A stretch of 64,000 nucleotides of DNA from Macrostomum lignano (taxonomy: Eukaryota), in NCBI GenBank assembly GCA_002269645.1, contig NIVC01002179.1, forward strand, positions 131,275-195,274, written 5' to 3'. Position numbers and translations under genes: made by a program. The notes beneath the pieces are model-generated. The model saw only the letters and a list, made by a program, of their open reading frames with translations, was not told where the DNA came from and ran no database searches. Of this stretch, positions 23,532 to 27,545 are shown piece after piece. Each line of letters starts with the position of its first letter. Within the stretch, counting starts at the first letter, position 1.

Positions 23532-26500
23532 TCAGTCATCCATCGCCAGAATTATACCAGGTAGAGGTCGACGCTCAGCAGTGCGCTTCCTTCGCTTTCC
23601 CGGTCCGCCAGGCCGGCTAAGGTGCAGGATCTGGTCCAGCAGCTCGGCGCCGTGCATCGCGTCGCAGTGACCGCCGAGGTCGAGAAATCCGCAGTACCGC
23701 TTCAATACGCTGTGGCTGCCTGGGCGCCTGATTAAATCATTTGTTGGCGAATTAAATGCAACTCCCGATCCCAGATCCCCGATCCCAGATCCCCGATCCC
23801 AGATCCCCGATCCCAGATCCCCGATCCCAGATCCCCGATCCCAGATCCCCGATCCCAGATCCCCGATCCCAGATCCCCGATCCCAGATCCCCGATCCCAG
23901 ATCCCCGATCCCAGATCCCCGATCCCAGATCCCCGATCCCAGATCCCCGATCCCAGATCCCCGATCCCAGATCCCCGATCCCAGATCCCCGATCCCAGAT
24001 CCCCGATCCCAGATCCCCGATCCCAGATCCCCGATCCCAGATCCCCGATCCCAGATCCCCGATCCCAGATCCCCGATCCCAGATCCCCGATCCCAGATCC
24101 CCGATCCCAGATCCCCGATCCCAGATCCCCGATCCCAGATCCCCGATCCCAGATCCCCGATCCCAGATCCCCGATCCCAGATCCCCGATCCCAGATCCCC
24201 GATCCCAGATCCCCGATCCCAGATCCCCGATCCCAGATCCCCGATCCCAGATCCCCGATCCCAGATCCCCGATCCCAGATCCCCGATCCCAGATCCCCGA
24301 TCCCAGATCCCCGATCCCAGATCCCCGATCCCAGATCCCCGATCCCAGATCCCCGATCCCAGATCCCCGATCCCAGATCCCCGATCCCAGATCCCCGATC
24401 CCAGATCCCCGATCCCAGATCCCCGATCCCAGATCCCCGATCCCAGATCCCCGATCCCAGATCCCGATCCCAGATCCCCGATCCCAGATCCCCGATCCCA
24501 GATCCCCGATCCCAGATCCCCGATCCCAGATCCCCGATCCCAGATCCCCGATCCCAGATCCCCGATCCCAGATCCCCGATCCCAGATCCCCGATCCCAGA
24601 TCCCCGATCCCAGATCCCCGATCCCAGATCCCCGATCCCAGATCCCCGATCCCAGATCCCCGATCCCAGATCCCCGATCCCAGATCCCCGATCCCAGATC
24701 CCCGATCCCAGATCCCCGATCCCAGATCCCCGATCCCAGATCCCCGATCCCAGATCCCCGATCCCAGATCCCCGATCCCAGATCCCCGATCCCAGATCCC
24801 CGATCCCAGATCCCCGATCCCAGATCCCCGATCCCAGATCCCCGATCCCAGATCCCCGATCCCAGATCCCCGATCCCAGATCCCCGATCCCAGATCCCCG
24901 ATCCCAGATCCCCGATCCCAGATCCCCGATCCCAGATCCCCGATCCCAGATCCCCGATCCCAGATCCCCGATCCCAGATCCCCGATCCCAGATCCCCGAT
25001 CCCAGATCCCGATCCCAGATCCCCGATCCCAGATCCCCGATCCCAGATCCCCGATCCCAGATCCCCGATCCCAGATCCCCGATCCCAGATCCCCGATCCC
25101 AGATCCCCGATCCCAGATCCCCGATCCCAGATCCCCGATCCCAGATCCCCGATCCCAGATCCCCGATCCCAGATCCCCGATCCCAGATCCCCGATCCCAG
25201 ATCCCCGATCCCAGATCCCCGATCCCAGATCCCCGATCCCAGATCCCCGATCCCAGATCCCCGATCCCAGATCCCCGATCCCAGATCCCCGATCCCAGAT
25301 CCCCGATCCCAGATCCCCGATCCCAGATCCCCGATCCCAGATCCCCGATCCCAGATCCCCGATCCCAGATCCCCGATCCCAGATCCCCGATCCCAGATCC
25401 CCGATCCCAGATCCCCGATCCCAGATCCCCGATCCCAGATCCCCGATCCCAGATCCCCGATCCCAGATCCCCGATCCCAGATCCCCGATCCCAGATCCCC
25501 GATCCCAGATCCCCGATCCCAGATCCCCGATCCCAGATCCCCGATCCCAGATCCCCGATCCCAGATCCCCGATCCCAGATCCCCGATCCCAGATCCCCGA
25601 TCCCAGATCCCCGATCCCAGATCCCCGATCCCAGATCCCCGATCCCAGATCCCCGATCCCAGATCCCCGATCCCAGATCCCCGATCCCAGATCCCCGATC
25701 CCAGATCCCCGATCCCAGATCCCCGATCCCAGATCCCCGATCCCAGATCCCCGATCCCAGATCCCCGATCCCAGATCCCCGATCCCAGATCCCCGATCCC
25801 AGATCCCCGATCCCAGATTCTGCACTAAGTAGCAAATGTACTTCTTAATGTTGTGGCACAAATGCTAAGACAATTTCTGTGGTTTCAGCAAGTTGTTCAA
25901 ATACTTTCTTGGATGAAGACCGTGACTTGAATTTCAAGCAACGAATGCTCAATAATTCAAGCGTAGGATGCGACCACCGAGAGCCGCGTGTCCTGGAGGC
26001 CCAGATTTTGACCAAATCTGAATCACTTCCCAGTGCTACTATAGTTTGCTTAGAACTCTGCTTCCAGGAGTAGAGGACAGCTCAGGCAAGGCTGTCGCGT
26101 GACTGTAAGCAGCTTTTCGGGGCGAAATCCGACACTGGAGTCTGGGGATCCGATTTGCGAAATATTTAAGCAAAGTGAAAATCGTGTGGATGCTATACCT
26201 CGGCAGTTCGAATTCACAAAAATTGGCACTCGCAAGCTAATCAGAAATAAAAGAGGCAAGAACATGCAATACCTCAAAAGTTACAGCACTTTAAACAATC
26301 GGCCGCCAAAAAAATTTACACGATAACTGGAGTGTAACGTCCTTCTACTTGAGAAGTCTTTGAACAAAGGACAGAAAAGACGGAAATCGTTAAGGTGAAA
26401 ACGATGCGAAATATCTCACTCGAACTCGACTTCGAAATTCTTAGAGTATTCATCCGCGTAGTGATCGTTGGGCGAGCGCCTGATGCCAAGACCACTGAAA

Positions 26501-27545
26501 GGTAGTTAGGCAGGTAGGTAGATAGATAATAAGATAGATAGATAGATAGATAGATAATAAGATAGATAGATAATAAGATAGATAGATAGATAGATAGATA
26601 ATAAGATAGATAGATTGATAGATAATAAGATAGATAGATAGATAGATAATAAGATAGATAGATTGATAGATAATAAGATAGATAGATAGATAGATAATAA
26701 GATAGATAGATTGATAGATAATAAGATAGATAGATAATAAGATAGATAGATAATAAGATAGATAGATTGATAGATAATAAGATAGATAGATAATAAGATA
26801 GACAGATAGATAAATAGATAGATAGATAGATAGATAAGATAGATAGATAATAAGATAGACAGATAGATAAATAGATAGATAGATAGATAGATAGATAGAT
26901 AGATAGATAGATAGATAGATAGATAGATAGATAGATAGATAGATAGATAGATAGATAGATAGATAGATAGATAGATAGATAGATAGATAGATAGATAGAT
27001 AATAAGATAGACAGATAGATAGATAGATAGATAGATAGATAGATAGATAGATAGATAGATAGATAGATAGATAGATAGATAATAAGATAGATAGATAATA
27101 AGATAGATAGATAGATAGATAATAAGATAGATAGATTGATAGATAATAAGATAGATAGATAATAAGATAGATAGATAATAAGATAGATAGATTGATAGAT
27201 AATAAGATAGATAGATAATAAGATAGACAGATAGATAAATAGATAGATAGATAGATAGATAGATAGATAGATAGATAGATAGATAGATAGATAGATAGAT
27301 AGATAGATAGATAGATAGATAGATAGATAGATAGATAGATAGATAGATAGATAGATAGATAGATAGATAGATAGATAGATAGATAGATAGATAGATAATA
27401 AGATAGACAGATAGATAGATAGATAGATAGATAGATAGATAGATAGATAGATAGATAGATAGATAACAGTCTCTCACTGAGCTGGGGCAGCTTCAAGCAG
27501 TGCGAAGGCGACCATGAATAAACAAATAAGTTTGTGTGTCGTCAT
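23532..27545 (-). CDS. Calcitonin-type neuropeptide precursor, 3 exons, 112 aa
   Basis: Exons 27478-27545, 26420-26494, 23532-23727 (junctions CA|T and GA|G; donors GTGAGA; first acceptor CTAACTACCTTTCAG). Product MTTHKLICLFMVAFALLEAAPAHGLGIRRSPNDHYADEYSKNFEVEFERPGSHSVLKR-YCGFLDLGGHCDAMHGAELLDQILHLSRPGGP-GKRRKRTAERRPLPGIILAMDD. Confidence 0.8.
23763..25817. repeat. Highly homogeneous 14-bp satellite (GATCCCAGATCCCC)n in intron 2 of the neuropeptide gene
   Basis: About 147 units; the only visible variants are two single-C losses near 24463 and 25008. Confidence 0.98.
26515..27465. repeat. (GATA)n microsatellite in intron 1 of the neuropeptide gene
   Basis: GATA with ATAA, GATT and GACA variants. 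Confidence 0.97.

Follow-up and report, generated by a model that had tools for sequence, protein, structure and literature searches.

Does the flatworm Macrostomum lignano possess a calcitonin-type peptide hormone, and could such a hormone be encoded by a gene whose introns are largely filled with satellite DNA? The question is raised by a 64-kb stretch of contig NIVC01002179.1 (hereafter the window, 64,000 nucleotides in full), in which a first-pass annotation made from the letters alone had described a hidden calcitonin-type neuropeptide precursor, encoded by three short minus-strand exons, in an animal that it took to be probably a flatworm, as the source of the contig turned out to be. 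The locus corresponds to the gene Mlig032934. Judging from sequence comparison, this gene is very probably one of two paralogous M. lignano genes that encode precursors of calcitonin-type neuropeptides or peptide hormones.

Gene structure, transcript and predicted peptide

Scripted splicing of the minus-strand exons of 68, 75 and 196 nt (27545-27478, 26494-26420 and 23727-23532) yielded an in-phase open reading frame (ORF) of 339 nt, encoding a precursor of 112 residues plus the stop, MTTHKLICLFMVAFALLEAAPAHGLGIRRSPNDHYADEYSKNFEVEFERPGSHSVLKRYCGFLDLGGHCDAMHGAELLDQILHLSRPGGPGKRRKRTAERRPLPGIILAMDD. Both introns follow the GT-AG rule, with GTGAGA as donor in each case and TTTCAG/T (intron 1) and AATCAG/G (intron 2) as acceptors, and both are in phase 2, the codon being split after its second base. 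A CTAAC motif is located at 26509-26505, 11 nt 5' of the first acceptor. Only 8% of the span from ATG to stop is coding. The features of the gene are as follows, with their basis in parentheses.

27546..27614, minus strand: annotated 5' untranslated region (UTR) of transcript Mlig032934.g2, open in frame (the N-terminus of PAA60210.1 is the translation of 27614-27546)
27478..27545, minus strand: coding part of exon 1, with the start codon, the predicted signal peptide M1-A22 (27545-27480) and 2 nt of H23 (sequence)
26495..27477, minus strand: intron 1, 983 bp, GTGAGA...TTTCAG, phase 2 (sequence, Tandem Repeats Finder)
26420..26494, minus strand: exon 2, acidic propeptide G24-F47 plus split codons, with RR at residues 28-29 (sequence)
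23728..26419, minus strand: intron 2, 2692 bp, GTGAGA...AATCAG, phase 2 (sequence, Tandem Repeats Finder)
23532..23727, minus strand: coding part of exon 3, with the end of the propeptide, KR, the predicted mature peptide, GKRRKR, a C-terminal extension peptide and the stop (sequence)
23697..23702, minus strand: putative Lys-Arg prohormone-convertase site K57-R58, N-terminal to the peptide (sequence)
23601..23696, minus strand: predicted mature peptide Y59-P90, 32 residues, YCGFLDLGGHCDAMHGAELLDQILHLSRPGGP (profile alignment to lophotrochozoan calcitonins, which covers residues 57-94)
23583..23600, minus strand: putative Gly amidation donor and basic run KRRKR, G91-R96 (sequence)

Mlig032934 is transcribed, and it is spliced from these three exons into a 112-residue prepropeptide. 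Indeed, a protein search matched the precursor to GenBank entry PAA60210.1 (Mlig032934.g2, "hypothetical protein") with 100% identity and 100% coverage, and the gene region of contig NIVC01002179.1 is identical to the window at every base (extracted locus L003, 10001-14083). Since the M. lignano annotation was built from genome-guided RNA sequencing (RNA-seq) and de novo transcripts (StringTie, TACO and TBONE), with ORFs called by TransDecoder (PMC5730564), this exact agreement provides transcript evidence for both junctions. The GenBank protein carries 23 additional N-terminal residues, SHIHSVPKVAFSYSYADLFATKT, before the methionine, which correspond to the 5' UTR translated in frame from 27614; it is because this region is open in frame that the entry is marked 'partial'. 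The annotated 5' end of the transcript (27614-27616) lies directly after an AG (tttaAG/agtcac). Spliced-leader trans-splicing is common in M. lignano, and an AG at this position would fit a spliced-leader acceptor.

The three-exon in-phase splicing, the GTGAGA donors, the CTAAC motif and the 112-residue product that the first-pass annotation had described are all present, and junctions 27478/26494 and 26420/23727, for which it had proposed RNA-seq mapping, are supported by transcripts through PAA60210.1. Its observation that the ORF list contains the last exon alone, joined to the translation of a GSGIWDR satellite (ORF 23532..25835, 767 residues), is also correct. By contrast, the gene is not hidden, as had been claimed, for three copies with precisely these exons are already in GenBank, each entered as a hypothetical protein and left unnamed. 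The related statement that automated annotation could easily miss the gene stands only in part: the RNA-seq-based GenBank model is right, whereas older UniProt models mis-splice the gene or fuse it to another. Among these, A0A1I8F8U6 is mis-spliced and named "Transposase", A0A1I8FBD4 and A0A1I8FQD2 are joined to the next gene, the latter being also frameshifted, and all three contradict the GenBank model. In A0A1I8FBD4 and A0A1I8FQD2, exon 3 stops at ...RRPLP, the point of exit being apparently the GT of CCTG/GTATAA (23553-23556), and the model continues into the downstream gene at 18771-21611.

The precursor displays the organization expected of a secreted prohormone from its first residues on. 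The N-terminus comprises MTTHK, a 12-residue hydrophobic core and AAPA; its Kyte-Doolittle maximum over 9 residues (3.1, at LICLFMVAF, residues 6-14) agrees with the signal peptide noticed in the first reading, and AlphaFold2, run on the single sequence, places a helix at residues 3-22. Cleavage of this signal peptide is likely after APA (A22). Dibasic sites, KR (57-58) and KRRKR (92-96), flank a 32-residue peptide plus Gly, KR-YCGFLDLGGHCDAMHGAELLDQILHLSRPGGP-GKRRKR, so that the 32 residues with C-x8-C and a GP followed by G-KRRKR, as had been reported, can be read directly from the sequence. In an alignment of 10 known calcitonins and the paralog described below (alignment A1), the P-G of the C-terminus (GGP-G-KRRKR) is invariant, and at the K57-R58 site R is invariant and K nearly so. 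The cysteines C60 and C69 are also found, at the same spacing, in the paralog. By analogy with known family members, a Cys60-Cys69 ring and a C-terminal Pro-amide can be inferred. When all 64 kb are translated in six frames, the pattern [KR][KR]xC-x5-10-C-x15-26-PG[KR][KR] appears a single time, and no second, alternatively spliced calcitonin exon, including one of CT1 type, was found in the introns or the rest of the window.

A maturation pathway can be proposed from these features. Signal peptidase would cut after A22, prohormone convertase would cleave at KR and KRRKR, and a carboxypeptidase would trim the basic residues. The Gly thus exposed would be converted into a C-terminal Pro-amide, and the Cys60-Cys69 disulfide ring would form. 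The secreted 32-residue peptide would then act on a secretin-family G-protein-coupled receptor (GPCR) of calcitonin/DH31 type, leading to a rise in cyclic AMP.

Family membership, the paralog and rival explanations

Family membership was assessed with hidden Markov models (HMMs) built from 11 CT2-type, 12 CT1-type and 8 DH31 peptides, none of them from flatworms; the CT2-type model draws on nemertean, phoronid and brachiopod calcitonins (PMC8557429, supplement). Composition-matched shuffles served as first control. The scores of the precursor were the following.

CT2-type HMM: 26.5 bits, E 2.9e-10 per sequence, score reached by 0/20,000 shuffles (best 15.2)
DH31 HMM: 7.9 bits, E 0.00027 per sequence, score reached by 18/20,000 shuffles
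CT1-type HMM: 2.1 bits, E 0.012 per sequence, score reached by 515/20,000 shuffles

Because the sequence had originally been picked for its cysteines and its P-G-KR, a second control was applied in which the shuffling spared KR, PGKRRKR and the two Cys with the distance between them. Under this control the real peptide scored 30.1 bits, a value reached by 0/20,000 shuffles (mean 2.1, standard deviation 3.6, maximum 25.6). At the scale of the proteome, the CT2-type match has an E of about 2e-5 (2.9e-10 x 72,846 annotated genes; gene count from PMC5730564), or about 1e-3 when the tail of the shuffles is cautiously extrapolated. BLASTP against the full Cerebratulus calcitonin precursor returned an alignment that covers exactly the peptide region (E 4e-8). 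In these comparisons the part of the precursor that contains the peptide shows significant similarity to CT2-type calcitonins of nemerteans, phoronids and brachiopods, and the three scores bear out the earlier placement of the peptide in the calcitonin rather than the DH31 branch.

A second M. lignano gene, Mlig031819 (PAA59768.1, PAA50059.1 and PAA67779.1), was retrieved by phmmer among 1.84 billion representative proteins. It comprises four exons, on contigs NIVC01003726.1 and NIVC01001456.1 (extracted as L004 6001-7176 and L005 6001-7176), and is labelled hypothetical in GenBank and 'conserved secreted protein' in UniProt. Its complete precursor of 128 residues ends in ...LRKR-ACGVLDLGGHCDAEYGAELLDQINHMLKPGGP-GRR-stop, with a predicted mature peptide of 32 residues that retains C-x8-C and is identical to that of Mlig032934 at 24/32 positions. 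The two paralogs have KR, both Cys, LDLGGHCDA, GAELLDQI and PGGPG in common without any change, and each gene encodes its peptide in the final exon, which a phase-2 intron precedes. In contrast, signal peptide and propeptide cannot be aligned, and the phmmer alignment is confined to residues 55-93. Bioactive neuropeptides usually show just this pattern, in which conservation is limited to the peptide and the putative sites of its cleavage and amidation. Mlig031819 scores 29.9 bits (E 2.7e-11) on the flatworm-free CT2 HMM and 4.5 bits on the DH31 HMM, and it has, three residues past the ring, the Glu that is nearly invariant in the calcitonin family.

Several observations weigh against the calcitonin-type assignment. 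Eight residues separate the cysteines, compared with 6-7 in CT2-type peptides and 5 in vertebrate calcitonin; nevertheless, a ring of this size falls inside the family range, since CT1-type peptides have 9-10 intervening residues (PMC8557429). The hydrophobic moment of the peptide (0.31) is close to those of human (0.33) and Cerebratulus (0.28) calcitonin, but it is reached by 10% of shuffles and is not significant. The AlphaFold2 helix at 71-83, directly after the ring, is a weak hint only, with a predicted local distance difference test (pLDDT) score below 50 for most residues, the mean of the whole model being 43.7. A Pfam scan of the precursor returned no family, and PF00214 (Calc_CGRP_IAPP) was not matched. 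This negative result counts for little and is uninformative, because PF00214 also misses accepted protostome members: it gave human calcitonin 132 bits and left nemertean and phoronid calcitonins and lobster DH31 unmatched. Domain-based annotation pipelines can consequently be expected to leave protostome calcitonins unnamed.

The searches for relatives in other species point the same way. The phmmer search of the 1.84 billion representative proteins returned M. lignano sequences only, and so did the precursor when used as query in a word-indexed search of 5.8 billion proteins. A profile that combined the flatworm peptides with trochozoan calcitonins, searched in the second way, retrieved four short exons encoding calcitonin; they derive from stray animal DNA in metagenomes, and none is of flatworm origin. 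A scan of metagenomes for the patterns LDLGGHCD and [HY]GAELLDQ gave one confirmed match, which was rejected as a chance octamer in a bacterial protein of 350 residues and no relative of the peptide; it lies in an ORF (translation table 11) on JACZCW010023632.1 (2611-3663 of L006), a contig taken as bacterial, and contains YCAELDLGGHCDWRLP. The coincidence is a warning against searching by motif only. As no homolog was found in other species, conservation rests on the within-species paralog. The expectation that the Cys pair and the P-G-dibasic site would be conserved is therefore borne out as far as a divergent paralog of the same species allows. Moreover, the three genomic copies of Mlig032934 are 98-99% identical in introns and exons alike, so that they carry almost no information on selection.

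Against this background, three other explanations have to be weighed. That Mlig032934 is the flatworm ortholog of DH31, and not a member of the Cys-containing calcitonin branch, appears very improbable. Arthropod DH31 peptides (GLDLGLGRG...AGGP-amide) do share LDLG and a C-terminal GGP-amide with the M. lignano peptide, and the DH31 score of 7.9 bits, weak as it is, was reached by just 18/20,000 shuffles; a weak signal of this kind is, however, expected between two paralogous families. DH31 peptides are without cysteines, whereas both M. lignano peptides have the pair, and the CT2-type HMM gives Mlig032934 and Mlig031819 26.5 and 29.9 bits compared with 7.9 and 4.5 for DH31. Somewhat less improbable, though still poorly favoured, is a lineage-specific secreted peptide with a Cys ring, for instance from a gland or with a defensive or adhesive function, which would have converged on calcitonin and would not signal through a calcitonin-type receptor. 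Such a peptide would account for the failure to find orthologs outside M. lignano in protein and metagenome searches and for a ring of 8 residues, atypical among CT2-type peptides. Yet the likeness exceeds a generic scaffold, as none of the 20,000 scaffold-preserving shuffles attained the real score, the Pro follows the second Cys at the same distance as in the CT2-type peptides (21 residues), and the proteome-scale E for the calcitonin match is about 2e-5. The paralog, in addition, scores 29.9 bits independently, with the family's near-invariant Glu restored.

Scarcely credible, finally, is the view that Mlig032934 is an artefactual model, or a pseudogene decaying amid satellites and devoid of functional product. 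The setting might invite this view, with tandem repeats in 38% of the window, coding sequence in 8% of the ATG-to-stop span and inconsistent older gene predictions at the locus. Nevertheless, the model derives from transcripts, all three copies have intact ORFs and canonical splice sites with only synonymous differences in the mature peptide, and the peptide is preserved in a divergent paralog. The reading of Mlig032934 and Mlig031819 as calcitonin-type precursor genes is thus preferred to each of these alternatives.

Satellite arrays, gene copies and the neighbouring gene

The introns proved to be filled with satellites, as had been noted at first reading. According to Tandem Repeats Finder, 97% of intron 1 is a (GATA)n-derived tandem array (26515-27465), and 76% of intron 2 is a 14-bp minisatellite, CCCGATCCCAGATC, present in 147 copies with 99% matches (23764-25818) and preceded by 584 bp of unique sequence. 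The same 14-bp satellite recurs at 27852-28133, approximately 240 bp 5' of the point where the transcript begins; a single repeat family thus occurs both within the gene and on its 5' side. In the window as a whole, 32 distinct tandem arrays with a Tandem Repeats Finder score of at least 200 occupy 37.6% of the sequence; since simple and tandem repeats make up 15% of the M. lignano genome (PMC5730564), the region is unusually rich in satellites.

Mlig032934 is present in three copies (g1 to g3) on separate contigs (extracted loci L001 10001-14019 and L002 10001-11812, and window positions 23532-27614), all with intact ORFs and canonical splice sites, in line with the assembly of the DV1 line, which is known to be redundant (PMC5730564). 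The identity of 98-99% between copies applies to the exons, the unique part of intron 2 and the flanks. Exon 2 of the window copy has the same sequence as in L002, and L001 departs from it at 2 nt. At the protein level the copies differ by one residue each in the signal peptide, the propeptide and the C-terminal extension, while the mature peptide is identical, its two nucleotide differences both falling in third codon positions. Intron lengths, on the other hand, vary several-fold: 983, 2378 and 422 bp for intron 1 and 2692, 1233 and 988 bp for intron 2. The comparison shows rapid change in array length between recent duplicates and indicates that the arrays expand and contract freely while the exons are unaffected. 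The intronic satellite arrays are passengers that leave splicing undisturbed.

The downstream neighbour, on the minus strand at 18771-21611, has an open frame of 946 codons and an annotated, Q/H-rich product of 787 residues, in which no Pfam domain was found. It contains a 57-bp tandem array (19774-20432, 11.6 copies, 96% matches) that translates into 19-residue repeats, GNTVGANGNTGAWTGCREA, and a (GCT)n tract at 19007-19193.

Significance and comparison with known systems

Calcitonin/DH31 signalling is an ancient hormone system of bilaterians, and naming the gene would show that M. lignano, an early-branching flatworm, kept a calcitonin-type hormone. Because of this phylogenetic position, the two named genes would fill a gap in the neuropeptide map of spiralians. 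They would also turn six 'hypothetical' GenBank entries (three copies each of Mlig032934 and Mlig031819) into annotated prohormones and would provide a concrete peptide for synthesis, with which receptors could be deorphanised and effects on osmoregulation or muscle control examined. As transgenesis is established in M. lignano (PMC5730564), such functional tests are practical. As to the role of the peptide, one may only guess, by analogy, at ion and water balance or muscle relaxation; the former is proposed for oyster calcitonin and insect DH31, and the latter is described in starfish (PMC6002491). The result is incremental, a matter of annotation and evolution, and brings no new mechanism.

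No paper naming Mlig032934, Mlig031819, the peptide motif or any calcitonin in Macrostomum was found in the literature; Thiel et al. 2018 mention M. lignano in a figure legend, and their supplements contain no M. lignano calcitonin. The family is therefore already known, and these members of it are probably not yet named. The chance is slightly better than even that the two paralogs are the first calcitonin-type genes recognised in Macrostomorpha, with predicted peptides that mix an 8-residue ring and LGGHC with a DH31-like LDLG and GGP-amide. If this is true, the flatworm ancestor had calcitonin signalling, which was later lost in planarians and parasitic flatworms, and the system can be tested in a flatworm where transgenesis and RNA interference work. 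The survey of flatworm neuropeptides by Koziol and colleagues, from 2016, is said to list no calcitonin for parasitic flatworms.

Calcitonin-type peptides are known in annelids, molluscs, nemerteans, brachiopods and phoronids (PMC8557429), as well as in xenacoelomorphs (PMC6188537), and secretin-family GPCRs resembling the 'diuretic hormone receptor' are reported in Schistosoma and Schmidtea (PMC3261222). Within the phylum, the polyclad Prostheceraeus crozieri is reported to have a calcitonin proneuropeptide among the markers of a larval neuron cluster (Piovani et al. 2023, PMC10396302; reviewed in PMC13551398). Both species belong to free-living, early-branching lineages, the evidence in P. 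crozieri being larval single-cell expression and that in M. lignano genomic and sequence-based.

The closest likeness is to the CT2-type peptides contained in lophotrochozoan calcitonin precursors (Thiel et al. 2021, PMC8557429), such as those of the nemertean Cerebratulus, KR-NCLVNLGGHCATETAAAIADMYHYLNSAESP-GRKRR, and the phoronid Phoronis, KR-HCLNLGGHCSIEGAANLHDTYRYYNSALSP-GRR, both amidated (PMC8557429). In alignment A1 these share with the M. lignano peptides the preceding KR, the ring motif L-[ND]-L-G-G-H-C, the P-G-basic sites and the spacing of the C-terminal Pro from the second Cys, which is exactly 21 residues. They differ in their ring, of 6-7 instead of 8 residues, and in their C-terminus, YLNSxxSP-amide instead of the PGGP-amide predicted in M. 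lignano. Furthermore, whereas most trochozoan precursors combine a CT1-type and a CT2-type peptide, M. lignano has one peptide per precursor and two separate genes.

Arthropod DH31 resembles the predicted M. lignano peptides in length (31-32 residues), in LDLG near the N-terminus, in the GGP-amide at the C-terminus and in dibasic processing, but it is without cysteines, and the DH31 HMM gives just 7.9 (Mlig032934) and 4.5 bits (Mlig031819). Vertebrate calcitonin has a C-x5-C ring that starts at residue 1, and its family model, PF00214, gives no sequence match for M. lignano; nevertheless, its length of 32 residues, its N-terminal disulfide ring and its Pro-amide derived from P-G-basic recur in the peptides predicted for M. 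lignano, in which a central segment prone to form a helix, another vertebrate feature, is weakly suggested. In the vertebrate gene CALCA, the calcitonin peptide is encoded by an exon of its own, and the predicted M. lignano peptide is likewise contained in a single exon.

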